Source: Macrostomum lignano
Taxonomy: Eukaryota
Length of the DNA stretch: 64,000 nt
Direction of reading: 5' to 3'
NCBI GenBank assembly: GCA_002269645.1
Contig: NIVC01000228.1
Coordinates: 17,865 to 81,864 of the forward strand
Below the pieces are notes generated by a model, which saw only the letters and a program-made list of their open reading frames with translations, made no database searches and was not told where the DNA came from. This document shows, one piece after another, positions 1,607 through 57,284 of this stretch (position 1 is its first letter; every line of letters starts with the position of its first letter). The position numbers were made by a program, and so were the translations under genes.

Positions 1607-3642
1607 ATGGCCGACGCTGTTATGACTGCTTGTCCGATTTGTGGCATGTTGATCTCTAATAAGAACATGGCCAGGCATATCGCCAAGCAACATAGTAATT
1701 ATGTCGACGAATTCAATTGGAGCACTGTCGTCGAGCCTCAGCGACCGGCTGTTGATGCGCCGATTATACTCAAAGCGAAGGCAATTTGGCACTCGTTGCG
1801 AGTACGGCAGCAACCAGCTGGACAGCTTAACAAGCGACCATGTCCTGATTGTGGCAAGTATGTCAAACAATTGACAAGACATCTTGCCCATACATGTGCC
1901 CAAAGAAGACGTCGTCATCCAATTGTCGGACAAACCTGTCAAGCGCCTGGTGCGACGAGCGCATGCTTATCGGAGGCAAACTTGCATCGGACTGTTGAAC
2001 TGCCTGTCGTCAGTTTATCCGCTGGTCCATCTACAAGTGGTTTACTCGACGGTGTAGACGTTGGACCAAGCAGTGATTCCAATTTTCAAACTGCGACCAA
2101 GACAGTCAACAGTGAACGCCGCCGCGCTCAAACGGTGACCCCGGCATCGAACACCGAACGTCAATCGGCAGCTAAGTTCGCAACCGGGCCGACCAATGCC
2201 GCGCCTGAGCATGTTAGACCGTGTGTCGTCGAATCTGTCGACGAGTTGTACAACCAAGTCGAACAGAGACCATCTGGCGACGACCATGTTCATCCATCGT
2301 CTAACAATGATTCGGTCGGCAACAGCATCGCCGATGCGACAATTCGAAAGGCGCGCCAATTCCAAGGTAATAATAATTAATCATTAAATTCTTCTATATT
2401 AGTAGATAGTATCGCACAATATTATTGTATACTTATCGACGTGTACCAATTACATAGTTAATGGATATTGTTTTATGCTTAAACAACCAACAGGCTATTT
2501 GACTGATCTGCAAAAAACAGCTAGTCAACTTGACAGGCTTGCAGAACAGCTTCGTCCAGACATGGAGACTAGCGACGTAGACATTGTCGATGTGACACGT
2601 GTACTCCGTGGTCACGTCGAATTGGCGTCTAAACAGCTGGTCCGTGCACTCGAGACGAGCATCAGTCAGGTCAAGCGTCCTGCTATCGATAGACTGGCCA
2701 GCGCGGTACAACGGCACCAAGAAGTAGGAGAAGAGATCGCGGTTGGTAACGTCGTCGCGACATCAGACGACGAGATTGTTGCCAGCTTATTGGACGCGAT
2801 CGAACAGTGTGCCAAGGACAATGAAACTGCAGATTCTGAGCAGCAAGGCAGAGTCATTGTCGTACCAGCGCCGCCTGACAACGACCAAGCCGCCGACGTG
2901 TCGTCTGGTTCCGATGCCGACATTCAGGACGAAGCGGATGACAATGCGGGTGGTTCCGACAGCAGTGTGAGCGAGACTGATGATCCACTTGCCGTGATCG
3001 ACTATGGTGAAGCACAGTCTATCGCCGAGGACATGACTAAGCGACTTGTCGATATTTGGTGGAAAATTAATAACAAGATCGAAGAAAACAAGTCGCATGT
3101 CCATCGTCGGAAACAACTGACCACTGCGGTTCGTCGGTTCGAGGAACGCTTGCCAAATTAAAACATAAGCTGGGTGTCAGTCTGGAGACTTGGTTAAATG
3201 CTCCGCACCGAGTTGCCACAGATTTGACAGAGATGAAAACCCGCGGTGTCTGGCAAGCAAGTACCGCCGGAGTAAAAGCATGCCAATTACAGTGCATCCT
3301 AGCCGCAGTCAAGACTTTATTGGAAAATGAGTCTGATTTCGGTGCCATCACTGTAATTAGGGCACTCCGGTTATCGGAACCACCCAACGGCGTATTCACT
3401 GGCGCAGCGGATGACGTCACTACCGCGGCCAGACTATTACATGGAATAGCCAGCGGAGTAAAGAAGTTGTCCAGCAATCTATACCATCGAAAGACAGTGT
3501 CTGCGTTTCTAATACCTCGAATCGATGCTGTCTACGTAAGTACCTGTTTGTTTGTTTGTTTGTTTGCTTGATTATATTTTTGAAATTATAATCTATATTA
3601 TGTGTAGATTAGAACTATAAACTATGATTGTGCATATGATGG

Positions 3643-3700
<58 letters not shown>

Positions 3701-5219
3701 AAGAACGATAATGATGATAATGATGATACATAAAGATTAATTTTTGCTTCTCTTATAATACACACAGGCGCAACTCGGACGGGTCAGCCGACAACAGGAC
3801 AATCGGTACCATCTAAATGATGATGCGCGACAACAAAAATACACCGAGTTGTTCCTGACTGTCGAAGAGTATGACCTCGTAAGAAACAGGCTACTGGAAT
3901 TGGTCAATATGATCGAGAAACATTCCTGGTCAGATTTACCAACAGAAGGTACCTGGTCCGACATTGCGCGGCTGGTCAATCAAACGAATTCTCCGCGAGG
4001 AAGATGGCGCGATTTCATAATGCCAATCAGTCGCGAGCTGGCATTCTTGGGCACTGCAATATTCCATAGCAATCGTGTATTGCCGTGGATTTATCTGTGT
4101 CGGCATCACCTCGAAGACGCGTTAAAAAACAAAGGCTCCAGTATGGATACCGTCATAACGCGATTACCACCTAGCGAGGTGCCACACAAGCAAGGTTCGC
4201 GAGGCCGTGGCGCAACACTGTTGTCACCGAGACGATTGTGTCAATCGTTCATTCTATGGTGCGAAAAGTTTGTCACGCCTGCGCTCGAAGACCTAGATGT
4301 GCAAGTGCCCGATGAAATGCAATATATCTTCCCTACTTCCAACGGGACGGCTCGAGTCACTGGTGACTATTCGAGGCTCGTGGTCGACGGTTCGGTTCGA
4401 GTGATTGGTCGCAAATACCGAGCCAGCGATGGACGGCGCAATCAATTGTCTGCGTATGCGCGTTTTCATCCGGACCAGATCGAACAGGTGACGCATTTGT
4501 ACGACACTTCGAAGCCTGTTGTCACCCGGTACTACGCCGCCGCAGCAATTGACGCAGCCCGACTCGAAGTTGCTACCGACTTGAGGGACTGTTTCGAAAA
4601 GTTCGCCGTCAACCAAACTGGTGACGAGCGGAGCAAATCGAAATGCGCAAAAGTCCAACAGTCCATCTTGGATGCGTCGACGCTTGCGACAGCAATCGAG
4701 CAGCAGACCAGTGAGTCGGTGACGAAGACGACGACGACAACGGGAAGCAGACGACGACGACGACGAAGCGTTAGCATCGTATTGCCAGAGCAGCACGATC
4801 AAGCCGACGTTGATACTGCACCGACTAAGACGTCTGGCAAATGTCGCCGCTCTCAGTCGCTGTCGCCGCGTCCACCATCGTCCGACAAATGTCGCCTCTC
4901 TAAATCGCCGTCGCCGCGTCCGCCATCGTCCAGCAAAGTTCGCTCATTACCGCCGTCTCCGCGCTCGCCGTCGTCTGGTAAGAGTCGTCTGAAATCAAAC
5001 TCTCACCAGCTGGCGTCGACATTGTCATCGTCGTCGAGCAGAATGTCGCGATCCAAGTCGCCACATTCGCCACCAACAAAAAAACGACGCGGTATTATCA
5101 ATTTGCCGAACGTCGATCTAGACGCCGACGATGATGACGATGCTGACGAAGACAGCAATGCTGACGAAGACAATTGTTCCTCAATTCTTTTCGAATTTTT
5201 ACGATTACATTTGGCTTAA
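1607..5219 (+). CDS. Spliced zinc-finger / tyrosine recombinase protein, ~1,084 aa (exons 1607-2366, 2494-3535 with a 1-nt frameshift between 3074 and 3161, 3768-5219)
   Basis: Intron 2367-2493 (GTAATA..CAACAG, phase 1) and intron 3536-3767 (GTAAGT..CACAG, phase 0) both join the flanking ORFs in frame. C2H2-like motifs CPICGMLISNKNMARHIAKQH and CPDCGKYVKQLTRHLAHTC. YR-like motifs LAFLGTAIFHSNRVLPWIYL (first R), HKQG (K), YIFPTSNG, RASDGRR (second R), HLYDTSKPVVTRYY (Tyr). Confidence 0.65.
3637..3728. repeat. (GAT)n microsatellite inside the second intron of the YR gene
   Basis: Visible run of GAT/GGT triplets. Confidence 0.95.
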
Positions 5220-5533
5220 AAGCTAAAGTTGTTCAATAGATTTTAAATAACAGGTCCGTCCATGGATAATAATTATAATAAGCCGTTGTTAATTTTTACA
5301 CTTGTTTTATTTGTGCGCATAATTGATTATTAGATAAAGCAAGTGACAATACATTTCACTATTAATCGTAGTTGTCGAATCTAAAGTCAGCAATTAATTA
5401 AGACTAAATACAAGTAATTATATTTCAATTGCATTGTACCTTATGGTTTGTTAGACACTTTGTTCTAAGAGAATTTACCTATGCTCTAAATACTAATTGG
5501 AATGAATTGTAATTGGCACAGTTAAACAGTTCA

Positions 5534-8500
5534 CACGGTGCTACCATAGTCGGAAAATTGCTTAAAAAATTCACCGGAAAAGTTATTTGTCACAATTGAT
5601 ACTCGAATTAGTAAGGATTCCTTAGAAGAAAAAATAAAAATCGTAGTTGTTCGTTTTAGCTCAAAAAGTGCTATTTTCAGTTTTTACCATAGACGAATTA
5701 ATAAAAAAGCGAAGTATCACCGTACTGTTTAGAAAACAATTCGATTGAGTCTAGGATCAAATGCAAGCATTAAAAAACATGTTACTGATATTCATCAATG
5801 ATTGGTTGATGCCTAAAAGCTACACATTTGACTTGGATGGGCCTACCACAAGAGAGTCTTAAGGCCCATTCACACTGCCATCAAACGAGACCAAATTTCA
5901 AGTGATCACACGACATGTGCATAGTTTTTCATCCCTTTGTACGTAAGTCATTTGAGTTGGTTGCTTGTTTGATGGCGTTGTGAATGAGCTTTTATACTCG
6001 TACTCACCCTGTTCGGATGAGTCACTGGTTCAGATCCACCCAGCCCGCCCAGACCCAAAGCTTTATCCTCAGCCAATCCCTCCACCATTCTAAATACGTA
6101 GGTAAGCACTCGTACGCTGTGGCTTGCTCTCTCTCTTCCTGAGCTGTACATACAAAGTATGATATTGTACATTGGTGTGTGCTCTTTGCACCAAGCACTC
6201 GCCGAACCACCCTCAGTCTTGTAATGCCATCGTGCTCATTTATGTTTTTCATCAATATAAACGTCAAACCTCAAACGTAAGGAGGTCCCGTCTGAGGAGG
6301 TTTTGTTGTCCAACTCTGTCTAAAAATGTTTCATCCAAACATTTAGTTGCAACGATTGTGCTTGCGTGTACACAGTTTTTGTCATGCCACTGTCACACGA
6401 AGATTGCCTCAATCGGATCTGCATTTTGTGCTTTTCGAAGGCAAAAGAGTTGCGATCCGTTACGCCCTGGATGCTGGCCATCATCAATCGGCACAGTGGC
6501 TGGCTCTACGATCCGCACGATAATCGCGTTCCCAAGGCAATTTGTGGCACGTGCAGATTCGCTCTGCAGCAGCTGGAGAAGGGCCAACGGGCTGATGTGC
6601 CACCGATGTATGACTTCAGGGACGTGCAGCCACTGCCGGTGACCCGATCAGTGGGCCAAGATGGATGTGACTGTAAGATCTGCAGCACTGCCGGATGCAG
6701 AGTCCATCCTCCAGAAGCCAACGTCCCAAAGCGGTCTGTTGGGCGGCCGAGTTTGACGGCGGACGAGGCTACAACGCCCAAGCCCGAAATGGTCAAGGTC
6801 TGCTCCTTCTGCATCAGTCCTATTGGCAGGGGCAAGCCACACACATGCAACAGACCCACAAGACTGCAGAATGCGCATGCCCTGTTGCAGGAAGCGTCCC
6901 CGGAATTCCCAGAGCGGCTCGCCACAACAATTGTGCGGCAGAAACTTATTACTTCAGGCTCCGGAGACACAGCCTCTGGCATCACCGTGCTGGCATCCAA
7001 CGCTGGACCCTCAATGAGGCTGGCCATGAATCCGCCGCCTCCGAAGCCAACAGCGGTCTTCACGGCGGATAATATGCGTCATCTGCAAGGTGAGCTGGGC
7101 CTCAGTTCGCGCAAAACGGAGGTTGTACTTCGAAATCTTCGGTCTTCGATTGGCGCCTCAGCTGTCCAGAGCAACATCCGGCAGACATTGAGGGAGATGG
7201 ATCACGAACTGGATGACCTCTTCCAAGCGAAGCAGCTGGCGTTTATCCGAGAAGAGAGGGGAAGGCAGACTCCAGCTGAGCAGTGGGCCGTTGTCTGCAC
7301 TGATGTGGTCGAGCTCCTGGGCCGCATGATTGCAAACCGCCGGCTGATGGATGTTGCTTCCACAGTCGTCAGAATTGGAATCGATGGTGGAGGTGGGTTC
7401 TTGAAGCTCTCGATATCCGTTTTTGACCTGTGCGTGTGTGCTGGTGAGGAGCAGCAGAAGGGGGCTGATCGCCGATTCCTCGACTCTGGCGTGCATCGGG
7501 CCGTCATCCTTGGCATCGCTCCCAACACGCAGGAGAACCACAGGAACCTGGAGTGTCTCTGGGAGAGCTGCCGCCTGCAGCTTCTGTCGGCGAACATCAG
7601 CATCGCGTGCGACCTAAAACTTGCCAACATCCTGCTCGGCTTGATGGCCCACAGCAGCTCGCATCCCTGCACCTGGTGCAACGTCAATAAAGGGAGCCTT
7701 GACAGCTGCGGCGAGCCAAGGACCTTTGGCAGCCTCAGTGAGAAATACCAGGCCTACCTGGCTGCTGGTGGTGAACGCCAACTAGCTAAGCACTTCGATA
7801 ACGTCGTCCAGCCCAGCATCTTTTCCGCTGGAGTTGAAGTCCCGGTGTTGCACATTGTCCCTCCGCCGGAGCTGCACCTGCTGACCGGTGCGGTCCATGT
7901 GCTGTACGAGGGTCTGCATGGTGTGTGGCCCGAGAGCGAAGCTTGGCTTACAGCTTGCAATGTCCAACGTGACAAGCATCACGGTGGCAGCTTCACTGGC
8001 AATGCGAGCCGCAAGTTGCTGCGCAACGTGGACCTGCTAGAAGCGATGTGCCCGATGGCAGCGCTGCCATTTGTTGCCGCCCTTCGAGCATTGAACTCGG
8101 TCGTGGTGTCATGCTTCGGGAGTGAGCTGCGTTCCAATTTCGAGCAGGCGATTCAGGAATTTCGCACCAGTTATGCCGATCTCGGCATTTCCATCAGTCC
8201 AAAAATCCACGCGATTTTCCACCACGTCGGTGACTTCTGCCGCGCCAAGGACAAAACAGGCCTGGGGCCATGGAGCGAACAATGCACGGAGTCGATGCAC
8301 AGAGACTTCCTCCTGCATTGGGAGAGATACAAGGTGGCGAGCACGCATCCTCTCTTCGCTGAAAGGCTCCTGGCAGCTGTGCAGTGTTACAACAGTCGCC
8401 ATTTGTGAGCGTTTTATGGAAAGTGCGAATCCGGAACTGCAACAGTTGAACTGCAACGCAAGTATTGGACAGTTATGAAGTCAGAAAATTTAGTAGCACA

Positions 8501-9143
8501 ATTTTTCAACCCACTCAGTTATTGTAGTCAAAGCCTCCAGGAAAATCAACCCGCTAAATGTCCCCTTTGAAGTCTATATATTAAATTGCAATTGTAACGA
8601 TTCTAATTTGAATTGTAAGGTAATACAAAACTTTGTACGATAGGGGTGCTTTCACAAACCCGAAATTTCATAGCATCAAGAACATATTCACATGGTTTGG
8701 GGTTAGATATTAAGGTGAAAGAATATAAAAAATAATTTTTATGTTGTAAAATTTGGGGTTTGTGAAACGCCATAGCACCATGCTGCTTTGAGTTGTTTTG
8801 CTTCATGTAAGACAGTGTGCTAAGCTTCGAGTAAATTTAAAATGTGCATACAATACAATATTCATGGACTTGCTGAAAAAATTTGTGAATTTGTTTCGAT
8901 TTAAATTGTTATAACTTTTCTTTAATACGCTTTTGACAACAATTTGAAAGAATTCAATTACAATGCAGTAAATTTCCAATATAATCTATGGTAAAAACAG
9001 AAAATTGTTTTTTTGAGCTAAAATGAACGAGTACAATTTTAATTTTTTCTTCCATGGAATCCTTAATAACTCGATTGTCGATTGTGACAAATAACTTTTC
9101 TGGTGAATTTTTAAAGCAATTTTCCGCCTATGGTAGCACCGTG
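5534..9143 (+). mobile_element. Chapaev-type (CMC superfamily) DNA transposon, apparently full length
   Basis: ~135-bp imperfect TIRs starting CACGGTGCTACCATAG at 5534 and ending CTATGGTAGCACCGTG at 9143. 4-bp TSD TTCA at 5530-5533 and 9144-9147. Single internal transposase ORF. Confidence 0.88.
6384..8408 (+). CDS. Chapaev/RAG1-related DDE transposase, 674 aa
   Basis: N-terminal H-x7-C-x2-C..P-x3-C-x2-C..C-x-C-x2-C zinc region. Core motifs IGIDGGGG, ACDLKLANILLG, HPCTWC, PELHLLTG, GGSFTGN, PKIH, WSEQCTESMH (D, D, E present). No stops. First ATG is at 6384; the ORF track starts at GTG 6366. Confidence 0.88.
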   Translation: MPLSHEDCLNRICILCFSKAKELRSVTPWMLAIINRHSGWLYDPHDNRVPKAICGTCRFALQQLEKGQRADVPPMYDFRDVQPLPVTRSVGQDGCDCKICSTAGCRVHPPEANVPKRSVGRPSLTADEATTPKPEMVKVCSFCISPIGRGKPHTCNRPTRLQNAHALLQEASPEFPERLATTIVRQKLITSGSGDTASGITVLASNAGPSMRLAMNPPPPKPTAVFTADNMRHLQGELGLSSRKTEVVLRNLRSSIGASAVQSNIRQTLREMDHELDDLFQAKQLAFIREERGRQTPAEQWAVVCTDVVELLGRMIANRRLMDVASTVVRIGIDGGGGFLKLSISVFDLCVCAGEEQQKGADRRFLDSGVHRAVILGIAPNTQENHRNLECLWESCRLQLLSANISIACDLKLANILLGLMAHSSSHPCTWCNVNKGSLDSCGEPRTFGSLSEKYQAYLAAGGERQLAKHFDNVVQPSIFSAGVEVPVLHIVPPPELHLLTGAVHVLYEGLHGVWPESEAWLTACNVQRDKHHGGSFTGNASRKLLRNVDLLEAMCPMAALPFVAALRALNSVVVSCFGSELRSNFEQAIQEFRTSYADLGISISPKIHAIFHHVGDFCRAKDKTGLGPWSEQCTESMHRDFLLHWERYKVASTHPLFAERLLAAVQCYNSRHL

Positions 9144-10084
9144 TTCATTATGATCTAAAATTTCTTTGATCTACATAGTTTGGCATACAATTGAATGTCT
9201 GACCCACTAGCTAGATCAATGTAAAGATTATCTATGTCCTGTGTATAGATAAGCTACATTAATATAAAGCTAAATATATTGGTTAAGACAGACTACAACC
9301 ATATTATGCTTTAATATTAATTTTCTTTGAATTGTATAAATAACCTATGAAAGTCAAATTTCAAATAATGAGTATTTGTGATGGACAAAACAACTTATTA
9401 TTGATGCTCTTATCAATAATAGTTTTCTAATATCAATATGCATACAAGATATGCTAATTTATTGAATTAATTAGGAAGAAAATATATTTTATTAAAATAT
9501 GATTAGCACATAGTTTGGTTTCCCGTTTATTATGATTCAAGGCAAGACCAGATTTGGTCACAATGTCGCATATCACACCAATATAAATATAAGGATAACT
9601 ATATGCAAAGGTCTGTCATTTTATATATTGAATTTCAATTCTTTTCTTCTTTTAATAAAAAATAAAGGCTAAATGTAGCTAGGTCAAAGACAAAGTATGA
9701 TAGAGAACAGCAAAATAATCAATTAGCATGTTGGAACCAAGCCATATTGTATATTTATTGGCCAATTGCAATATAGAATTGGAATTAAATGACTAGATGA
9801 TTAAATTGGATAGACTTCAACAAGGCAAAAATTAAGAATATACATATTTAGTTCAATAAGTCATTTCAATTTCAATAAGTCATTTGAATAGATTTTTAAT
9901 TTGAGTTTTGGAACTCAGGGCATACAGGCAAAAAAAAATAGAAAAATTCACATAAGTGACACTATATGAATGTATCTATTATTATTTATTTATTTATTTA
10001 TTTATTACATAGTGTAAACATAGATAAGCCTAGTATTCTATGGCCTAGGCATATCTTATATGCCTATAATGGCTAAATAGGTAT

Positions 10085-11159: not shown

Positions 11160-12610
11160 GAGATCTGTATATATTTGTGATATCCTTGTTAATTCCATGT
11201 TAATTAGGGTAGGGAACAAATCAATATAGTTGTTATAGCCAATGAAACTATGGCTGGTCCATAATCAGCTCTGCGAATTTGTGCACTTATATACTGTGCA
11301 TATATTTGTGTTATCCTTGTTAATTAGGGCAGTGAACAAACCACTAGAGTTGTTACAGCCAATGAAACTATGGCTGGTCCATGATCAGTTCTACGAATTT
11401 GTGCATTTATATACTGTGCATATATTTGTGTTATCCTTGTTAATTAGGGCAGGGAATAAATCAATATAGTTGTTACAGCCAACGAAACTATGGCTGGTCT
11501 ATGATCAGTTCTGCGAATTTGTGCACTTATATACTGTGCATATATTTGTGTTATCCTTGTTAATTAGGGCAGGGAATAAATCAATATAGTTGTTACAGCC
11601 AATGAAACTATGGCTGGTCCATAATCAGCTCTGCGAATTTGTGCACTTACATACTGTGCATATATTTGTGTTATCCTTGTTAATTAGGGCAGTGAACAAA
11701 CCACTAGAGTTGTTACAGCCAATGAAACTATGGCTGGTCCATGATCAGTTCTACGAATTTGTGCACTTATATAATGTGCATATATTTGTGGTATCCTTGT
11801 TAATTAGGGCAGGGAATAAATCAATAGAGTTGTTACAGCCAACGAAACTATGGCTGGTCCATGATCAGTTCTACGAATTTGTGCACTTATATAATGTGCA
11901 TATATTTGTGTTATCCTTGTTAATTAGGGCAGGGAATAAATCAATAGAGTTGTTACAGCCAACGAAACTATGGCTGGTCTATGATCAGTTCTGCGAATTT
12001 GTGCACTTATATACTGTGCATGTATTTGTGTTATCCTTGTTAATTAGGGCAGGGAATAAATCAATATAGTTGTTATAGCCAATGAAACTATGGCTGGTCC
12101 ATGATCAGTTCTACGAATTTGTGCACTTATATAATGTGCATATATTTGTGGTATCCTTGTTAATTAGGGCAGGGAATAAATCAATAGAGTTGTTACAGCC
12201 AACGAAACTATGGCTGGTCCATGATCAGTTCTACGAATTTGTGCACTTATATAATGTGCATATATTTGTGTTATCCTTGTTAATTAGGGCAGGGAATAAA
12301 TCAATAGAGTTGTTACAGCCAACGAAACTATGGCTGGTCTATGATCAGTTCTGCGAATTTGTGCACTTATATACTGTGCATGTATTTGTGTTATCCTTGT
12401 TAATTAGGGCAGGGAATAAATCAATATAGTTGTTACAGCCAATGAAACTATGTCTGGTCCATCATCAGTTCTGCGAATTTGTGCACTTATATACTGTGTA
12501 TATATTTGTGTTATACTTGTTAATTAATAAACAATTGAGTTGTTGTAGCCAGTGAAACTACGGCTAGTCCATTATGAGCACTACAAATTTGTGCACTTAT
12601 ATGACCATGT
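11160..12610. repeat. 120-bp tandem repeat, about 12 copies
   Basis: AATGAAACTATGGCTGGTCC...GTTGTTACAGCC recurs at exact 120-bp period, so the sequence lines repeat every second row. Confidence 0.97.
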
Positions 12611-18115: not shown

Positions 18116-18589
18116 ACAATTATCTAATGATCACAGCTTCGCTATACAACAGGTCTATTACATGATGCGAGTTCAGTTGAAGCAGCCTCTCTATTATAAG
18201 CCCTTTTTATTATAGCTAGCGTCTTAAAACAAGTCATGTTTTCTTATGTGTGGAAAGGCATGGAAACTGTATGCGCTACTATTCTGGATAAATTGGGAAT
18301 CTACTACAACGCACTGCTGGCTAATAACTTCAAGCGTTTGAATCTTCATATCGCCAATTCACATAGACTTTCTATCAGTAGCTTTGCAAGTTTTAATAAA
18401 TATACTGACGCTGCTATTCTGACATTTGCAAACCCAACTGAATGGATTGGTTAATTGATGGACTTTCGTGTTTCATTATTGTCATCCAGGGTGACCGTTT
18501 AAACTTTTGATATCCAATGAAGGAAAAACAGCTGGATTCATTTAGCGCAACTGCTTTTGATCGGTAATCGAGGTCAAATCACCAGTCTT

Positions 18590-19560
18590 AGGGGTCAAAA
18601 CACCAGTAGAGGTCACATCACCAGTCAACATGGTCACATCACCAGTCAACATGGTCACATCACCAGTCAGTCTGGTCACATCACCAGTCAACATGGTCAC
18701 ATCACCAGTCAACATGGTCACATCACCAGTCAGTCTGGTCACATCACCAGTCATTAAGGTCACATCACCAGTCAATCGGGTCACATCACCAGTCACCAAG
18801 GTCACATCACCAGTCAGTCGGGTCACATCACCAGTCAATTGGGTCACATCACCAGTCAACTGGGTCACATCACCAGTCAGTCGGGTCACATCACCAGTCA
18901 ATTGGGTCACATCACCAGTCAACTGGGTCACATCACCAGTCAGTCGGGTCACATCACCAGTCAATTGGGTCACATCACCAGTCAACTATGTCACATCACC
19001 AGTCAACGCAGTCACATCACCAGTCAACGCGGTCACATCACCAGTCAGTCGGGTCACATCACCAGTCAATTGGGTCACATCACCAGTCAACTGGGTCACA
19101 TCACCAGTCAGTCGGGTCACATCACCAGTCAATTGGGTCACATCACCAGTCAACATGGTCACATCACTAGTCAGTCGGGTCACATCACCAGTCAGTCGGG
19201 TCACATCACCAGTCAATTGGGTCACATCACCAGTCAACTGGGTCACATCACCAGTCAACGCGGTCACATCACCAGTCAACGCGGTCACATCACCAGTCAA
19301 CGCGGTCACAACACCAGTCAACATGGTCACATCATCAGTCAACTGGGTCACATCACCAGTCAACGCGGTCACATCACCAGTCAGTTGGGTCACATCACCA
19401 GTCAGTCGGGTCACATCACCAGTCAGTCGGGTCACATCACCAGTCAACATGGTCACATCACCAGTCACCAAGGTCACATCACCAGTCCCTAAGGTCAAAA
19501 CACCAGTAGAGGTCATAACACCAGTAGAGGTCACATCACCAGTCACTAAGGTGATGTGAC
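18590..19560. repeat. 21-bp minisatellite GGTCACATCACCAGTCA(ACAT/GTCG/ATTG...), about 45 copies
   Basis: Visible. The long VTSPVN-type ORFs here are by-products of the repeat. Confidence 0.97.
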
Positions 19561-42761: not shown

Positions 42762-43559
42762 GCTGCAGGGCGGAGCTTCCAGACTGCACCCTGACTGGAA
42801 AACAGCTGGGATTTGAGAACGCCAGGAAATTATTTTTGGTAAGTCACCGAGTAATCCTACTACTGTCAGTAGACACTACGGAGCATAAACAAAAATTTTG
42901 TTAACGTAAATAAATTCTTGCTAAAATTTAAACTACCAACAGACGCTGTAAAAGACTTATTCCCGGCGGACCCAATTACAAAGAAGCTGGTGCATCAAGA
43001 TTACGACATCCAGCAGGCAATTATTGATGTTCTGCTCTGCGGCCGGATTCAGGCTGAAGCTGCTGCAGCTGCCATTGTCTCCACTGCTGCTGACTTTGAC
43101 TTTGGAGAAGGCCGGCCGCAGAAAAAGCACAAAACGGCACGCGTGCTACAGGAAAGTGATGAAGCTGAAAACCTGCCCAGCGAGATCAGTGACAATTGTC
43201 AGTCAGTCGATAGCGTAGAGCTGGACATGGTGAAAATTAATACTATTTACTGAACAGCCCGTTTGAACTACTTGTACTTATCTATTACTAACAATTTTAG
43301 TCAATCTTAGTTTTTTTATTGGGTTTTGCATAGTTTTTGCATGTATTTATTGCCTACTATCTTTACGTGCTAAATATTATTTCTCATCTATTACTTTTTA
43401 AATATAAACATACGCTCGTACTAGCTGATGTGGGCAGGAGCCGCATGAATGCAATAGTAATAAATGTTAAAAAACTATCTGAATCTTTGTGATAAAAGAG
43501 AAAAGGCTGAGTGGCCTACTAAAAGTAGCAAAACTAGTACTTTGCTACAAATGTTCAGC

Positions 43560-44222
43560 TATCTATGATAGTGTCTATAGACATGTCTATTCTTCAGATA
43601 TCTAGGATGATAGTGTCTATAGAGATGTACTTTCTTCAGATATCTATGACAGTGCCTATAGACATTTCTATTGTTCAGATATCTATGACAGTGCCTATAG
43701 ACATTTCTATTGTTCAGATATCTATGACAGTGCCTATGGACATTTCTATTGTTCAGATATCTATGAAAGTGCCTATGGCCATTTCTATTGTTCAGATATC
43801 TATGAAAGTGCCTATGGCTATTTCTATTCTTCAGATATCTATGACAGTGCCTATAGACATTTCTATTGTTCAGATATCTATGACAGTGCCTATGGACATT
43901 TCTATTGTTCAGATATCTATGAAAGTGCCTATGGCCATTTCTATTGTTCAGATATCTATGAAAGTGCCTATGGCTATTTCTATTGTTCAGATATCTATGA
44001 AAGTGCCTATGGCTATTTCTATTGTTCAGATATCTGGGATGATAGTGTCTACAGACATTTCTATTGTTCGGATATCTATGACAGTGCCTATAGACATGTA
44101 TATTGTTCAGATATCTGACAGTGTCTATAGACGTGCCTATTGTTCAGATGTCTATTATAGTGCCTATAGAGATGTACATTGTTTAGATATCTAAGACTAT
44201 AGTGCCTATAGACATGTACATT
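43560..44222. repeat. 39-bp tandem repeat TTCAGATATCTATGACAGTGCCTATAGACATTTCTATTG, about 17 copies
   Basis: Visible. Confidence 0.95.
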
Positions 44223-44390: not shown

Positions 44391-45959
44391 CTACTACAGC
44401 ATTCTGGATAGCGGAGAGCGCAGCCGCCTGCTGCCGTACTACACTGAGCAGGCCAAACTGACCCTGTCTACAGCTTCTCCGCCTAGCGCAATGAATCATC
44501 ACAAATCATTGAACTGCTACATCAGTCTCAGCAGGAATCTGAAATACCTGGAGAGCAATCGGAGCAAAGCTGAATCGTTGGTACAGCGTGTCCGCTGTAG
44601 AGAAGCTGCCAGCCACCAGTCACCTGTTAAACAGCATGCGAGTTGACGTGCCTGTGAACGGCGACAATGCGGCGCTAATCTTTGTTACTGGCCTGTTCAT
44701 CGAGCTGACGCCCGGTCAAGACGGCGGCGACAGTCAGGACAAGACTCTGCGCACGTTCAGCCGCACCCTGGTGCTGGTGCCAGTGCCCGGCTCCGAGGCT
44801 GGCATGCAGATTCACGCCGACGATTTTTATATCACCCACGTTAGCCATCAGGTTAGACTTGGATTTGTACAGTTGGTGGAATTAATTCCCTGGGTCTCGG
44901 AGCTTTATAGAATTCTCCAAACTTTATGCTCATTGGAATTCTCCAAACTTTATGCTCATAGGAATTCTCAAAACTTTATGCTCATAGGAATTCTCCAAAC
45001 TTTGTGCTCATAGGAATTCTCCAAACTTTATGCTCATAAGAAATTCTCCAAACTTTATGCTCATAGGAATTCTCCAAACTTTATGCTCATAGGAATTCTC
45101 CAAACTTTGTGCTCATTGGAATTCTCCAAACTTTATGCTCATAGGAATTCTCCAAACTTTATGCTCATAGGAATTCTCCAAACTTTATGCTCATAGGAAT
45201 TCTCCAAACTTTATGCTCATAGGAATTCTCCAAACTTTATGCTCATAGGAATTCTCCAAACTTTATGCTCATAGGAATTCTCCAAACTTTGTGCTCATTG
45301 GAATTCTCCAAACTTTATGCTCATAGGAATTCTCCAAACTTTATGTTCATTGGAATTTCCCATAGCTTATCTACATAGAAATTCCCCATATCTTATCTAC
45401 ATAGAAATTCCCCATATCTTATCTACATAGAAATTCCCCATATCTTATCTACATAGAAATTCCCCATATCTTATCTACATAGAAATTCCCCATATCTTAT
45501 CTACATAGAAATTCCCATATCTTATCTACATAGAAATTCCCCATAGCTTATCTACATAGAAATTCCCCATATCTTATCTACATAGAAATTCCCCATAGCT
45601 TATCTACATAGAAATTCCCCATAGATTGTCCGTTCTACAAGTTCCCAATGTCCTATATTTATGGCAACTTTATTTATCGTATTATCTATGGAAATTGCCC
45701 GCGACTTCATCGGCTAATCGTCAAAGAAAATCCTCATATTGCCTCATATTCGTGTCAACCGCCCCCGCAACCGCAGGGTGCCGAGTGGCTCCTAGAACAG
45801 AGAGCCAGCGCGACTACAAGCGCCACCCTTCAGGAGCTACCGGCCGCGGCCAAAGAGGCCATGGTAACCGAATTCGAATTCGGCTGGGATTTTAAAGTGG
45901 CCGCTGAAAATTTCGCCCAGCTAAAAGCTGAAGGCAAAATCCCACCGGAAGCGTTTTAG
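44391..45959 (+). CDS. Nuclear RNA export factor (NXF1/TAP family) 3' exons: NTF2-like domain (44391-44851) and TAP-C/UBA-like domain (~45780-45959), with one frameshift near 44585
   Basis: YYSILDSGERSRLLPYY..YISLSRNL..LPATSH..VDV..VTGLFIE..LRTFSRTLVLVP..IHADDFYI, and WDFKVAAENFAQLKAEGKIPPEAF*. Acceptor CGCAG at 44390, donor GTTAGA at 44852. Confidence 0.8.
44905..45625. repeat. Two adjacent 26-bp intronic minisatellites (GGAATTCTCCAAACTTTATGCTCATA, about 17 copies; AGAAATTCCCCATATCTTATCTACAT, about 10 copies)
   Basis: Visible; they switch at about 45355. Confidence 0.95.
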
Positions 45960-46194: not shown

Positions 46195-49100
46195 GCATCC
46201 TCGCCATTTGATTCCCCATCTATAGACTCCTCGCCATTTGATTCCCCATCTATAGACTCCTCGCCATTTGATTCCCCATCTATAGACTCCTCGCCATTTG
46301 ATTCCCCATCTATAGACTCCTTCCCATTTGATTCCCCATCTATAGACTCCTCGCCATTTGATTCCCCATCTATAGGCTCCTCGCCATTTGATTCCCCATC
46401 TATAGACTCCTCGCCATTTGATTCCCCATCTATAGACTCCTCGCCATTTGATTCCCCATCTATAGACTCCTCGCCATTTGATTCCCCATCTATAGACTCC
46501 TCGCCATTTGATTCCCCATCTATAGACTCCTCGCCATTTGATTCCCCATCTATAGACTCCTCGCCATTTGATTCCCCATCTATAGACTCCTCGCCATTTG
46601 ATTCCCCATCTAGACTCCTCGCCATTTGATTCCCCATCTATAGACTCCTCGCCATTTGATTCCCCATCTATAGACTCCTCGCCATTTGATTCCCCATCTA
46701 TAGACTCCTCGCCATTTGATTCCCCATCTATAGACTCCTCGCCATTTGATTCCCCATCTATAGACTCCTCGCCATTTGATTCCCCATCTATAGACTCCTC
46801 GCCATTTGATTCCCCATCTATAGACTCCTCGCCATTTGATTCCCCATCTATAGACTCCTCGCCATTTGATTCCCCATCTATAGACTCCTCGCCATTTGAT
46901 TCCCCATCTATAGACTCCTCGCCATTTGATTCCCCATCTAGACTCCTCGCCATTTGATTCCCCATCTATAGACTCCTCGCCATTTGATTCCCCATCTATA
47001 GACTCCTCGCCATTTGATTCCCCATCTAGACTCCTCGCCATTTGATTCCCCATCTAGACTCCTCGCCATTTGATTCCCCATCTAGACTCCTCGCCATTTG
47101 ATTCCCCATCTATAGACTCCTCGCCATTTGATTCTCCATCTATAGACTCCTCGCCATTTGATTCCCCATCTAGACTCCTCGCCATTTGATTCCCATCTAG
47201 ACTCCTCGCCATTTGATTCCCATCTATAGACTCCTCGCCATTTGATTCCCATCTATAGACTCCTCGCCATTTGATTCCCCATCTATACTCCTCGCCATTT
47301 GATTCCCCATCTATAGACTCCTCGCCATTTGATTCCCCATCTATAGACTCCTCGCCATTTGATTCCCCATCTATAGACTCCTCGCCATTTGATTCCCCAT
47401 CTAGACTCCTCGCCATTTGATTCCCCATCTATAGACTCCTCGCCATTTGATTCCCCATCTAGACTCCTCGCCATTTGATTCTCCATCTATAGACTCCTCG
47501 CCATTTGATTCCCCATCTAGACTCCTCGCCATTTGATTCCCCATCTATAGACTCCTCGCCATTTGATTCCCCATCTAGAATCCTCGCCATTTGATTCCCC
47601 ATCTATAGACTCCTCGCCATTTGATTCCCCATCTATAGACTCCTCGCCATTTGATTCCCCATCTAGACTCCTCGCCATTTGATTCCCCATCTATAGACTC
47701 CTCGCCATTTGATTCCCCATCTATAGACTCCTCGCCATTTGATTCTCCATCTATAGACTCCTCGCCATTTGATTCCCCATCTAGAATCCTCGCCATTTGA
47801 TTCTCCATCTATAGACTCCTCGCCATTTGATTCCCCATCTATAGACTCCTCGCCATTTGATTCCCCATCTAGACTCCTCGCCATTTGATTCCCCATCTAT
47901 AGACTCCTCGCCATTTGATTCCCCATCTATAGACTCCTCGCCATTTGATTCCCCATCTATAGACTCCTCGCCATTTGATTCCCCATCTAGACTCCTCGCC
48001 ATTTGATTCCCCATCTATAGACTCCTCGCCATTTGATTCCCCATCTATAGACTCCTCGCCATTAGATTCCCCATCTATAGACTCCTCGCCATTTGATTCC
48101 CCATCTAGACTCCTCGCCATTTGATTCCCCATCTATAGACTCCTCGCCATTTGATTCCCCATCTAGACTCCTCGCCATTTGATTCCCCATCTATAGACTC
48201 CTCGCCATTTGATTCCCCATCTATAGACTCCTCGCCATTTGATTCCCCATCTATAGACTCCTCGCCATTTGATTCCCCATCTAGACTCCTCGCCATTTGA
48301 TTCCCCATCTATAGACTCCTCGCCATTTGATTCCCCATCTAGACTCCTCGCCATTTGATTCCCCATCTATAGACTCCTCGCCATTTGATTCCCCATCTAT
48401 AGACTCCTCGCCATTTGATTCCCCATCTATAGACTCCTCGCCATTTGATTCCCCATCTAGACTCCTCGCCATTTGATTCCCCATCTATAGACTCCTCGCC
48501 ATTTGATTCCCCATCTATAGACTCCTCGCCATTTGATTCTCCATCTATAGACTCCTCGCCATTTGATTCCCATCTAGACTCCTCGCCATTTGATTCTCCA
48601 TCTATAGACTCCTCGCCATTTGATTCCCCATCTATAGACTCCTCGCCATTTGATTCCCCATCTATAGACTCCTCGCCATTTGATTCCCCATCTATAGACT
48701 CCTCGCCATTTGATTCCCCATCTAGACTCCTCGCCATTAGATTCCCCATCTATAGACTCCTCGCCATTTGATTCCTCATCTAGACTCCTCGCCATTTGAT
48801 TCCCCATCTATAGACTCCTCGCCATTTGATTCCCCATCTATAGACTCCTCGCCATTTGATTCCCCATCTAGACTCCTCGCCATTTGATTCCCCATCTATA
48901 GACTCCTCGCCATTTGATTCCCCATCTATAGACTCCTCGCCATTTGATTCCCCATCTAGACTCCTCGCCATTTGATTCCCCATCTATAGACTCCTCGCCA
49001 TTTGATTCCCCATCTAGACTCCTCGCCATTTGATTCCCCATCTATAGACTCCTCGCCATTTGATTCCCCATCTATAGACTCCTCGCCATTTGATTCCCCA

Positions 49101-51490
49101 TCTATAGACTCCTCGCCATTTGATTCCCCATCTAGACTCCTCGCCATTTGATTCCCCATCTATAGACTCCTCGCCATTTGATTCCCCATCTATAGACTCC
49201 TCGCCATTTGATTCTCCATCTATAGACTCCTCGCCATTTGATTCCCCATCTAGACTCCTCGCCATTTGATTCTCCATCTATAGACTCCTCGCCATTTGAT
49301 TCCCCATCTATAGACTCCTCGCCATTTGATTCCCCATCTAGACTCCTCGCCATTTGATTCCCCATCTATAGACTCCTCGCCATTTGATTCCCCATCTATA
49401 GACTCCTCGCCATTTGATTCCCCATCTATAGACTCCTCGCCATTTGATTCCCCATCTAGACTCCTCGCCATTTGATTCCCCATCTATAGACTCCTCGCCA
49501 TTTGATTCCCCATCTAGACTCCTCGCCATTTGATTCCCCATCTATAGACTCCTCGCCATTTGATTCCTCATCTAGACTCCTCGCCATTAGATTTCCCATC
49601 TATAGACTCCTCGCCATTTGATTCCCCATCTATAGACTCCTCGCCATTTGATTCCCCATCTTGACTCCTCGCCATTAGATTCCCCATCTATAGACTCCTC
49701 GCCATTTGATTCCTCATCTAGACTCCTCGCCATTTGATTCCTCATCTAGACTCCTCGCCATTTGATTCCCCATCTAGACTCCTCGCCATTTGATTCCCCA
49801 TCTATAGACTCCTCGCCATTTGATTCCCCATCTAGACTCCTCGCCATTTGATTCCCCATCTATAGACTCCTCGCCATTTGATTCCCCATCTAGACTCCTC
49901 GCCATTTGATTCCCCATCTAGACTCCTCGCCATTTGATTCATCATCTAGAATCCTCGCCATTTGATTCCCCATCTATAGACTCCTCGCCATTTGATTCCC
50001 CATCTATAGACTCCTCGCCATTTGATTCTCCATCTATAGACTCCTCGCCATTTGATTCCCCATCTAGACTCCTCGCCATTTGATTCTCCATCTATAGACT
50101 CCTCGCCATTTGATTCCCCATCTATAGACTCCTCGCCATTTGATTCCCCATCTAGACTCCTCGCCATTTGATTCCCCATCTATAGACTCCTCGCCATTTG
50201 ATTCCCCATCTATAGACTCCTCGCCATTTGATTCCCCATCTATAGACTCCTCGCCATTTGATTCCCCATCTAGACTCCTCGCTATTTGATTCCCCATCTA
50301 TAGACTCCTCGCCATTTGATTCCCCATCTAGACTCCTCGCCATTTGATTCCCCATCTATAGACTCCTCGCCATTTGATTCCCCATCTATAGACTCCTCGC
50401 CATTTGATTCCCCATCTATAGACTCCTCGCCATTTGATTCCCCATCTATAGACTCCTCGCCATTTGATTCTCCATCTATAGACTCCTCGCCATTTGATTC
50501 CCCATCTAGAATCCTCGCCATTTGATTCTCCATCTATAGACTCCTCGCCATTTGATTCCCCATCTATAGACTCCTCGCCATTTGATTCCCCATCTAGACT
50601 CCTCGCCATTTGATTCCCCATCTATAGACTCCTCGCCATTTGATTCCCCATCTAGACTCCTCGCCATTTGATTCCCCATCTATAGACTCCTCGCCATTTG
50701 ATTCCCCATCTAGACTCCTCGCCATTTGATTCTCCATCTATAGACTCCTCGCCATTTGATTCCCCATCTAGACTCCTCGCCATTTGATTCTCCATCTATA
50801 GACTCCTCGCCATTTGATTCCCCATCTATAGACTCCTCGCCATTTGATTCCCCATCTAGACTCCTCGCCATTTGATTCCCCATCTATAGACTCCTCGCCA
50901 TTTGATTCCCCATCTAGACTCCTCGCCATTAGATTCCCCATCTATAGACTCCTCGCCATTTGATTCCTCATCTAGACTCCTCGCCATTAGATTCCCCATC
51001 TATAGACTCCTCGCCATTTGATTCCCCATCTATAGACTCCTCGCCATTTGATTCCCCATCTAGACTCCTCGCCATTAGATTCCCCATCTATAGACTCCTC
51101 GCCATTTGATTCCTCATCTAGACTCCTCGCCATTTGATTCCTCATCTAGACTCCTCGCCATTTGATTCCCCATCTATAGACTCCTCGCCATTTGATTCCC
51201 CATCTAGACTCCTCGCCATTTGATTCTCCATCTATAGACTCCTCGCCATTTGATTCCCCATCTATAGACTCCTCGCCATTTGATTCCCCATCTATAGACT
51301 CCTCGCCATTTGATTCCCCATCTATAGACTCCTCGCCATTTGATTCCCCATCTATAGACTCCTCGCCATTTGATTCCCCATCTAGACTCCTCGCCATTTG
51401 ATTCCCCATCTATAGACTCCTCGCCATTTGATTCCCCATCTATAGACTCCTCGTCATTTGATTCCCCATCTATAGACTCCTCGCCATTCG
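46195..51490. repeat. 5.3-kb satellite of 30-bp (CTCCTCGCCATTTGATTCCCCATCTATAGA) and 28-bp (…ATCTAGA) units, about 180 copies
   Basis: Visible. All the DGESNGEESI / WGIKWRGV ORFs are by-products. Confidence 0.99.
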
Positions 51491-52021: not shown

Positions 52022-53222
<1,201 letters not shown>

Positions 53223-54224
53223 GCTGTAAAGTTGGTGTACAATTAAAGCAAGAACAACAGCCTCATTAATATTGCATTTTTATTGTAAAACCAATGTTTA
53301 ATAATGGAAGAGTGCTCATGTGTGAATTAGGTTTGTGACAGAAGAAATAATGTGAAAGTGTAGTGAGCTAAATAGTGAAAAATCAAATACACAAAACAGG
53401 CACTGCAGTGAGTTTTAAAAATTGTAGTGCAAACAATCGCACTACAATTGTGCAAATTCTAATGACCCAAACAAGCTCATCAACAGCTTACTACTCTACG
53501 AGAGTAGCCAAAATAGCATGTTAAATAAATAAATAAATTCAATGCAAAATAACAGCCATACAAAGTGCTCTGCAATTCTAAACTGTAAAATAAACAGATA
53601 TATGTACACAAATTATAAATTACAGATTACAAACTTTCGAGCCTCTCAGGCAAGCAGTCGGGAAATTGGGAAATTTCAAACGCTAACTGTTCCTCGAGTT
53701 TTAAACATTGAGAGGAGAGACTTATACTGCTGAAAAGAGCCTGCAACGCTAAGTTCGGGAATATAATTTTCTTGCTTTATTCATGAAAACAAAAAGCACA
53801 ACATTCAAGGAAAATTCATTCTTAAAATTTTCTGACACTTCAAATCAAACCCCCGTGTTGGGGGTGGCGGCGATAGGGTTCAGTGTACACAGTGAATGCC
53901 CAGTAGGCTACAGATAGCAATGAAATGAAAGAACGATGAAATGATGGTAACCCTAACCCTAACCCTAACCACTGACGCCTCTAACTTGAATATTTTTAAG
54001 TATGGAAAGCATCTTTTGGATCTCTATTTAGCAGTCTTGATGGACTGCAATTTCATGGAGATGTCGGGTATTATTTGATGAAGTTCTGTTTCACGGAGAC
54101 GATTTTGATGGCTTTCAATTTCCCAAAGAAAATTTTGATAGATTTCTGTTTCACGGAGAGAATTTTGATGGATTTCTGTTTGACGGAGAGGATTTCGGTG
54201 GATTTGGTACCTTCAGTCAGTCAG

Positions 54225-55574: not shown

Positions 55575-56613
55575 TATTGAGCTACATGTAATCTTCCACA
55601 TTGAGCTACATGTAATCTTCCATATTGAGCTACATGCAATCTTCCATATTGAGCTACATGTAATCTTACATATTGAGCTACATGTAATCTTACATATTGA
55701 GCTACATGTAATCTTACATATTGAGCTACATGTAATCTTCCATATTGAGCTACATGCAATCTTCCATATTGAGCTACATGTAATCTTACATATTGAGCTA
55801 CATGTAATATTCCATATTGAGCTACATGTAATCTTCCACATTGAGCTACATGCAATCTTCCATATTGAGCTACATGTAATCTTCCATATTGAGCTACATG
55901 TAATCTTCCATATTGAGCTACATGTAATCTTCCATATTGAGCTACATGTAATCTTCCATATTGAGCTACATGTAATCTTCCACATTGAGCTACATGTAAT
56001 CTTACATATTGAGCTACATGTAATCTTACATATTGAGCTACATGTAATCTTCCATATTGAGCTACATGCAATCTTCCATATTGAGCTACATGTAATCTTA
56101 CATATTGAGCTACATGTAATATTCCATATTGAGCTACATGTAATCTTCCACATTGAGCTACATGCAATCTTCCATATTGAGCTACATGTAATCTTCCATA
56201 TTAAGCTACATGTAATCTTCCATATTGAGCTACATGTAATCTTCCATATTGAGCTACATGTAATCTTCCATATTGAGCTACATGTAATCTTCCACATTGA
56301 GCTACATGTAATCTTACATATTGAGCTACATGTAATCTTCCATATTGAGCTACATGTAATCTTCCATATTGAGCTACATGTAATCTTCCATATTGAGCTA
56401 CATGTAATCTTCCATATTCAGCTACATGTAATCTTCCATATTGAGCTACATGTAATCTTCCATATTGAGCTACATGTAATCTTCCACATTGAGCTACATG
56501 TAATCTTCCATATTGAGCTACATGTAATCTTCCATATTGAGCTACATGTTTGCATATTGAGCTACATGTAATCTTCCATATTGAGCTACATGTAATCTTC
56601 CACATTGAGCTAC
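55575..56613. repeat. 24-bp minisatellite ATTGAGCTACATGTAATCTTCCAT, about 43 copies
   Basis: Visible. The HIELHVIF ORFs are by-products. Confidence 0.98.
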
Positions 56614-57284
56614 AAGGCCTCAGAGAACAGCGGCTGACTGTATTGAAGTGTTCTGAAACCAGCTAAGTAGTCAGTACGAGTAGTATATCAGCGCATATTT
56701 ATTAGTTGTCAATGCAGATGCAGGTAAAAAACACAAAAGCTTTAATCCGCAGACAATGTCAATCACATTGGGAGGTGACAGTCCAGGTCGAGACAGACCG
56801 CATGGTTTGGGACAAAATCACCAAATGAATGAAGGAGTCGAACAGCAGGTACTGAAGGTGACACAAATACTGACAGACTGCAGTGCCATCCGGGGTGAAG
56901 GCAATCGACTCAGGAAATGAAAAAGCAAAACTGACAAGCAATTCCAATTCGTAAAAAAGGCCAATAGCAGCATTTAATGGAATACTTTCCTTGGGACTGA
57001 AGAACTGCGTGAAAAAAAAGACGCACAAAACGCATGACTTACTACTTATAAAAAATTGTGAATCAGTAGTACATCACAATAAATAAATCAGTTCGATTAT
57101 GCAACAGAGAAGATTGTTGGAACTGTGACTGGGGAATGAATGCAGATTAACTGGGGACTGGATGGGACTGAAACTGGTTGTGGGGACTCGAGGCTGATCG
57201 GCTTTGATTGACAGGTGACTGAGCATTGCTTGAGGTGATCAGCAATGGGAATTGGACTGATGCAGCACAGGGAAGCTTGCAGCC

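Follow-up and report, generated by a model that had tools for sequence, protein, structure and literature searches.

The window analyzed here is a stretch of 64,000 nucleotides from Macrostomum lignano (GenBank assembly GCA_002269645.1, contig NIVC01000228.1, positions 17,865 to 81,864 of the forward strand). On its plus strand, at 1607-5219, lies a spliced zinc-finger gene of about 1,080 codons, which is a member of a small gene family present in several copies and encodes in its C-terminal part a candidate tyrosine recombinase-like region. Four plus-strand open reading frames (ORFs) are listed at this locus (1607-2380, 2475-3161, 3224-3571 and 3849-5219), and splicing of 1607-2366, 2494-3535 and 3768-5219 with one frame correction yields an open frame of 1,084 codons. 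An initial annotation of this DNA had joined the four ORFs through two phase-matched GT-AG introns; the ORFs and phases were confirmed, proteins deposited in UniProt cross the junctions, and alternative acceptors exist. Intron 1 starts with the donor GTAATA at 2367 and intron 2 with GTAAGT, and both end with CAG. The G+C content of the exons is 0.52, compared to 0.30 in intron 1, 0.28 in intron 2 and 0.28-0.38 in the flanks, as expected for a real gene. This contrast, together with organism-matched UniProt proteins (a 100% identical stretch and a paralogue model of 1,084 amino acids), forms the basis of the gene model and confirms that the gene is real.

Exon 1 (1607-2366) begins with the ATG at 1607 and encodes two zinc fingers and a low-complexity region. 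Its donor GT at 2367 is the one used in the annotated model of the paralogue A0A1I8G604 (P0008), which shares both donors with the window gene. Intron 1 (2367-2544) has two in-frame acceptors, ending at 2493 as initially annotated or at 2544. The 17 amino acids GYLTDLQKTASQLDRLA encoded by 2494-2544 are missing from P0008, where the acceptor lies 51 nucleotides further on and the exon starts at 2545 instead of 2494. Of the two acceptors, it is thus the one at 2544 that occurs in an annotated model. Exon 2 (2545, or 2494, to 3535) encodes a helical region, an acidic linker (2832-2984) and, from about 3021 (IAEDMTKRLVDIWWK), the start of a conserved module, and is interrupted by a frameshift. 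Intron 2 (GTAAGT...ACACAG, 3536-3767) contains an (ATG)n microsatellite at 3636-3727, and an alternative acceptor ends at 3797. Both acceptors are represented among the paralogues: P0001, P0006 and P0007 read RIDAVY followed by AQLGRV (3535 joined to 3768), and P0008, P0005 and P0009 read RIDAVY followed by DNRYH, which corresponds to the acceptor 30 nucleotides further on (exon start 3798). Exon 3 (3768, or 3798, to 5219) encodes the rest of the conserved module, a tail rich in Ser-Arg (SR) and Ser-Pro (SP), a motif resembling a nuclear localization signal (NLS) and an acidic end, and closes with the stop codon TAA at 5217-5219.

The predicted pair of zinc fingers is present, but only the first is of the C2H2 type. 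Finger 1 (1631-1693, CPICGMLISNKNMARHIAKQH) has the pattern C-x2-C-x11-H-x4-H, and all four ligands are kept in P0008. Finger 2 (1841-1897, CPDCGKYVKQLTRHLAHTC) is a CCHC finger, C-x2-C-x9-H-x4-C, a pattern common to P0008 (CPHCHRIVRCVERHLKRSC). All eight ligands of both fingers are thus conserved in a region that is only about 33% identical. Pfam matches to the fingers stayed under the cut-offs (zf-Di19, E 0.016, 15.9 versus 27.5 bits; zf-C2H2_4, E 0.13, 13.5 versus 27 bits). The remaining elements of the predicted protein were all found as annotated. Besides the acidic linker, these are the Arg-rich, SR/SP-rich tail (4746-5090) with the motif PTKKRR at 5073-5090, and the acidic C-terminal stretch DLDADDDDDADEDSNADEDN at 5115-5174. 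The tail contains a 48-bp tandem repeat (4831-4931) that encodes a 16-amino acid SR unit and is present in 2.1 copies in the window gene versus 3 in P0008.

An 8-bp tandem duplication, GGTTCGTC followed by GGTTCGAG, occupies 3128-3143 of the plus strand (pattern CGGTTCG-T-CGGTTCG-A), shifts the frame and leads to a premature TAA at 3159-3161. Where P0008 reads TTAVRGTLAKLKHKL, the window reads TTAVRRFEERLPN followed by a stop in one frame and VRGTLAKLKHKL in another. Since deletion of one 8-bp unit (3128-3135) gives the TTAVRGTLAKLKHKL of P0008 exactly, the lesion is a tandem duplication and not the loss of a single base between 3074 and 3161 that had been assumed. With the frame ending at 3159-3161, no catalytic module can be produced from the window copy, which is a pseudogene or, at most, encodes a truncated zinc-finger protein of about 470 amino acids.

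An exhaustive phmmer search of 1.84 billion representatives matched four proteins. A cluster look-up showed that two of them stand for seven M. lignano UniProt proteins, and the other two are eukaryotic fragments with 26% and 32% identity, so that the family comprises three lineages. The gene had been described as hidden; however, its paralogues are already in UniProt as uncharacterized predicted proteins, and it is therefore only uncharacterized. A0A1I8GN39 (P0001) is 100% identical to amino acids 521-799 of the predicted product and crosses the intron 2 junction as predicted. P0008, named 'C2H2-type domain-containing protein', is a model of 1,084 amino acids and does not carry the 8-bp duplication. 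The name 'Ras-GEF domain-containing protein' is attached to A0A1I8GN39, A0A1I8G5E4, A0A1I8J0A6, A0A1I8H110, A0A1I8J9Q8 and A0A1I8J916. This automatic label of the fragments was not reproduced, with no RasGEF match in Pfam and no match in PDB. No recombinase annotation is found among the seven entries.

The copies differ by the frameshift of the window gene, a deletion of 113 internal residues in P0002, the repeat number in the tail and a swapped finger head. P0008 and the window gene are only about 33% identical over amino acids 8-131, which include the finger pair (window 1628-1999), and about 97% identical over the next 850 residues or so. This distribution of identity suggests that P0008 is a mosaic, which may have arisen by exchange of the DNA-binding head or by gene conversion confined to the rest of the gene. 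The contigs of the two eukaryotic fragments extend the homology, which starts at the ...WWK motif. L001 is a 2.4-kb JGI metagenome contig (sample 3300040801) with simple repeats on both sides (1-160 and about 2120-2375); between its ...PESGRW and AVRRLAMEF segments (1200-1240) it has a frameshift and a deletion of about 25 amino acids, and is thus also a decayed copy. L002 is a 1.8-kb Logan contig (run SRR31628394) with a short AT-rich GT-AG intron of 69 nucleotides (1223-1291) that keeps the frame, and with an acidic insertion of about 45 amino acids before the predicted hairpin. A word-indexed homologue search with the 917-amino acid product gave no match, and the same type of search with the three-lineage profile or the L001 protein returned only relatives of the query itself. 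Metagenome scans and a viral-contig scan found no relatives, and an exact-protein look-up of exon 1 gave no record.

The module conserved in the conceptual translations of the three lineages is about 440 amino acids long and extends from ...L..WWK to past the proposed tyrosine. In its C-terminal half, the candidate tyrosine recombinase-like catalytic region (3852-4616, plus strand) was delimited by invariant columns, a weak collinear hhalign alignment and a low-confidence AlphaFold 2 (AF2) model. It contains the motifs FLTVEE (3852-3869), SNRVLPW (4068-4088), PPSEVPHKQG (4167-4196), YIFPTSNG (4323-4346), YRASDGRR (from 4416) and LYDTSKPVVTRYY (4497-4535). Columns invariant in the three lineages are FLTxxE, R-x-x-P-W, D, E-V-x-x-K, F...P, F, RR and S. 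The FLTxxE motif sits where recombinase catalytic domains of the Pfam PF00589 type usually start. The retention of Arg, Lys, Arg and Tyr that had been noted from the window alone holds for the family: the box I-like Arg (RVLPW/RLQPW), the Lys in a predicted hairpin loop and the first Arg of SDGRR are invariant in three lineages, and the Thr of YDTS/LGTS and the final Tyr are kept in both lineages that cover those positions.

The family profile was compared by hhalign with a template of 39 recombinase domains (Kojima and Jurka, 2011; PMC3212892, Additional file 4), which was taken from machine-read text with some noise. Family positions 12-178 aligned with template positions 1-163, collinear from end to end, and the real score exceeded those of 149 of the 150 column shuffles (local z 2.6, global z 4.1). 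The alignment pairs R with R, D with D, C with C (PV), F with F, S with His, R with R, T with Trp/His and Y with Y; the Lys is displaced by four columns, within a loop. With a profile of 80 XerD orthologues, the alignment was similar but partial and weak (score 19-21.5).

Several observations weigh against a recombinase. The hhalign score was weak (15.1, P 0.087; global P 0.019), one of the 150 column shuffles reached it, and the hhalign probabilities were about 1% (P 0.02-0.14). No affinity to a Crypton group was detected, as CryptonA (10.9, null 12.2 ± 2.0), CryptonI (13.2, null 13.5 ± 1.8) and CryptonF (12.7, null 12.9 ± 2.3) all scored within the shuffle null; CryptonS was not a separate subset and was represented by two sequences within the full set of 39. 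Scores against the DIRS and prokaryotic subsets were likewise inside the null. Even at E ≤ 10, neither the M. lignano protein nor the two homologues nor the family profile had a recombinase match in Pfam, NCBIfam, PHROGs or PDB, and with a custom recombinase hidden Markov model the three family sequences scored no better than shuffles. AlphaFold runs on 495 and 221 amino acids gave unreliable models, with a predicted local distance difference test (pLDDT) of 43.5 and 46.7. An SR-rich tail is unusual for a transposase, and both canonical histidines are absent, the first His position being S, M or T across the family. M. lignano is described in PMC10733133 as a recent polyploid, and several near-identical copies therefore do not by themselves mean transposition.

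These points are shared by an explanation that dispenses with recombinases altogether. The gene may belong to a lineage-restricted family of nuclear zinc-finger/SR-rich proteins, in which R, K, R and Y reflect ordinary conservation, the copies come from polyploidy and segmental duplication, and the window copy is a pseudogenized duplicate. All library searches were negative, the scores against the hhalign subsets lay within the null, no fold evidence was obtained, nuclear regulatory or speckle proteins typically have acidic stretches and a tail rich in SR, and the paralogues are listed in UniProt as ordinary predicted proteins. We nevertheless regard this explanation as a serious but unlikely one: the alignment to the full template set is collinear from end to end and scores above nearly all shuffles, the invariant residues occupy precisely those columns where a recombinase would be expected to have them, the distribution is extremely patchy (three lineages in the representatives searched), copies are decayed in two lineages, and the locus is embedded in repeats.

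Prediction of the structure, which had been suggested as a check, gave an order of elements that is compatible with a recombinase. The low-confidence AF2 model of 221 amino acids contains a long helix with the Arg, a hairpin with the Lys in its loop and helices with SDGRR, the Thr and the Tyr, which is the order found in recombinases; the packing is unreliable. Foldseek with this model returned only chance matches of the Hsp70 type (E ~1) and no tyrosine recombinase fold, and since the pLDDT is below 50, the absence of such a match means little. Weak matches to RHG29_45_N, PUB_1 and FATC were far under the cut-offs and were rejected as chance.

It had also been proposed that both catalytic histidines are replaced. 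Their absence, and the Thr conserved at the His/Trp position, were confirmed for the family; however, the Ser of SDGRR is not a conserved replacement of the first His, since this position varies between S, M and T. The loss of both histidines, with this variation, would agree with a tyrosine recombinase that, similar to DUF3504, has been domesticated or has lost its catalytic activity, and whose fold is kept for binding of DNA or protein in a chromatin or transcription factor. The extra DNA-binding zinc fingers and nuclear-type tails resemble the Crypton-derived regulators of PMC3212892, and the annotated models include alternative splice forms. Such an origin is improbable, as R, K, R and Y are retained across the lineages, unlike in DUF3504, where most of the tetrad is missing (PMC3212892); Pfam PF12012 (DUF3504) gave no match at E ≤ 10, and the frameshifted and deleted copies and the patchiness are more easily reconciled with a selfish element than with a conserved gene of the host.

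The surroundings of the gene are rich in repeats. Upstream, at 117-1155, the 29-bp unit CTTATGGGAGCCGTTTTGACACACTGTTG is repeated about 30 times in a satellite that also shows higher-order periods of 72, 101 and 130 bp. This satellite stops about 450 bp short of the start codon, with degenerate units reaching to about 1280, and occurs nowhere else in the window. Downstream, a separate DNA transposon-like element (5533-9144) is bounded by terminal inverted repeats (TIRs) of 135-161 bp (87-89% identical) that start with CACGGTGCTACCATAG; TTCA is present on both outer flanks and may be a 4-bp target duplication. The intronless ORF of this element (6366-8408, 680 amino acids, G+C content 0.55) encodes Cys-rich motifs and had no Pfam or PDB match above noise. 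Between the satellite end at 1155 and the TIR element start at 5533 there is no other long ORF; upstream, the view of the unit is limited by the satellite and the edge of the window. In the window, neither terminal direct or inverted repeats around the gene nor other copies of the gene, its flanks or its introns were found.

A further explanation starts from this setting. The module could belong to a different, unrecognized nuclease or recombinase, or the gene could be one of several in a larger composite element, the other parts of which would lie outside the window or have been displaced by the satellite or TIR insertion. The 440 conserved amino acids are indeed without a known domain, and the window begins just 1.6 kb upstream of the gene, in satellite, so that the upstream limit is out of sight. 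Inspection of the invariant columns, on the other hand, revealed no DDE triad and no HUH or PD-(D/E)xK site, the GIY-YIG active site did not fit either, and no second conserved ORF is adjacent on either strand. We therefore consider this explanation very unlikely.

Taken together, we tentatively favor, at a probability somewhat short of even, the reading of the window gene as a decayed member of a highly divergent family of recombinase-like genes that are or were mobile. Recombinase ancestry of the conserved C-terminal domain by itself appears about evenly balanced. Decayed copies, patchy distribution and repeat-rich setting fit a selfish element. The proposed identity as a Crypton-like tyrosine recombinase is neither confirmed nor refuted: the motif residues are conserved and the weak hhalign alignment is collinear, but there is no affinity to a Crypton group and no library match, and the subset comparison does not support Crypton membership. 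The other outcome that had been considered, a close match to an already described Crypton family, was not found either, with CryptonA, CryptonI and CryptonF within the null.

The gene structure, the frameshift, the family with its conserved residues and the repeat-rich setting are shown by the data, and from these we infer a recombinase fold, catalysis and mobility along the following lines. From its N terminus, the predicted protein has the two zinc fingers, a linker that is helical and acidic, the module of about 440 amino acids and an acidic tail that is rich in SR and carries the NLS-like motif. Within the module, the C-terminal half would be a very divergent domain of the tyrosine recombinase type that kept Arg, Lys, Arg and the Tyr nucleophile and lost both histidines, and the family would represent, or derive from, a Crypton-type DNA element that encodes nothing but the recombinase. 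DNA may be bound by the zinc fingers together with the helical N-terminal portion of the module, the tail may deliver the protein to the nucleus, and the Tyr would attack the DNA backbone, leading to excision and reinsertion via a circular intermediate. A more far-reaching version, which we judge to be rather unlikely, would make the family an undescribed lineage of eukaryotic tyrosine recombinase DNA transposons outside the four Crypton groups, with an R-K-x-R-T-Y site lacking histidines, an exchangeable finger head that sets DNA specificity, and perhaps continuing mobility via intact copies of the A0A1I8G604 type. The role of the head is proposed because paralogues differ almost only there.

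If the family is confirmed as recombinases, the small set of eukaryotic transposons that encode only a recombinase would gain a very divergent branch without the histidines. The family would then also be an example of a recombinase whose zinc-finger DNA-binding head is swapped as a module, and an animal model in which transgenesis is already established would yield a candidate site-specific recombinase. If the recombinase reading fails, an orphan conserved module of about 440 amino acids is still defined, an unsupported automatic 'Ras-GEF' name is corrected, and the locus is marked as a pseudogene with a frameshift, set in satellite-rich DNA.

The rest of the window consists mostly of satellites and a Gypsy-type element. 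A 5.3-kb array at 46198-51488 contains about 180 copies of the 30-bp unit TCCTCGCCATTTGATTCCCCATCTATAGAC with strong strand skew, and is followed by about 1.2 kb of (ATAG)n at 52025-53223. Unrelated tandem arrays are located at 11194-12602 (120-bp unit), 18572-19545 (21 bp), 43552-44215 (39 bp), 44910-45621 (26 bp) and 55575-56614 (24 bp). The ORF at 18630-19559 is the translated 21-bp repeat, and its Pfam matches are low-complexity artefacts. On the plus strand, 59601-63254 encodes the pol of a Gypsy-type long terminal repeat retrotransposon with aspartic protease, reverse transcriptase, RNase H, an integrase zinc-binding domain and an integrase core; it is split over several ORFs and thus probably carries frameshifts. 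On the minus strand, an ORF at 57285-58061 encodes a clear CAP-Gly domain (Pfam E 4e-24) and may represent an exon of a cytoskeletal host gene that lies among the repeats.

Among known systems, the CryptonA and CryptonI elements of animals (Kojima and Jurka, 2011; PMC3212892) resemble the window gene in coding for nothing beyond one gene with introns, and in the lack of visible terminal repeats around this gene. The candidate catalytic residues of the family follow the order and spacing R...K...xxxR...x...Y, and animal hosts and a patchy distribution are common to both. In contrast to Cryptons, the window family has no detectable sequence affinity to any Crypton group and no Pfam match, and it lacks both histidines of the R-H-R-Y set. 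In the product of the window gene, a C2H2/CCHC pair lies at the N terminus and the C-terminal tail is long and SR-rich, whereas a C-terminal domain is missing from animal Cryptons according to their description; the product is also about twice as long.

With XerD and Cre the family shares a collinear hhalign alignment to the catalytic domains, in which LLxTS...Y falls on LLGHS...Y and IF..NG on LFPS, at scores that are not significant (P 0.03-0.14). The spacing from F to R is 35-36 residues in the window family and 37 in XerD, and that from R to T/H is 23 in both. Unlike these enzymes, the family has S, M or T in place of His and T in place of His/Trp, as well as large insertions between FLTxxE and the first Arg, and the helical part upstream in the module comprises about 190 amino acids, compared to about 100 in a standard N-terminal core-binding domain.

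The DUF3504 or Crypton-derived host genes (ZMYM2-4, QRICH1, KCTD1, KIAA1958, WOC) are similar in that a protein of the nuclear type carries zinc fingers together with a recombinase-like domain in which catalytic residues are degraded. According to PMC3212892, most of the tetrad is missing from DUF3504, which is conserved widely among animals. The window family, in contrast, is nearly an orphan without a PF12012 match, has decayed copies, and keeps R, K, R and Y.

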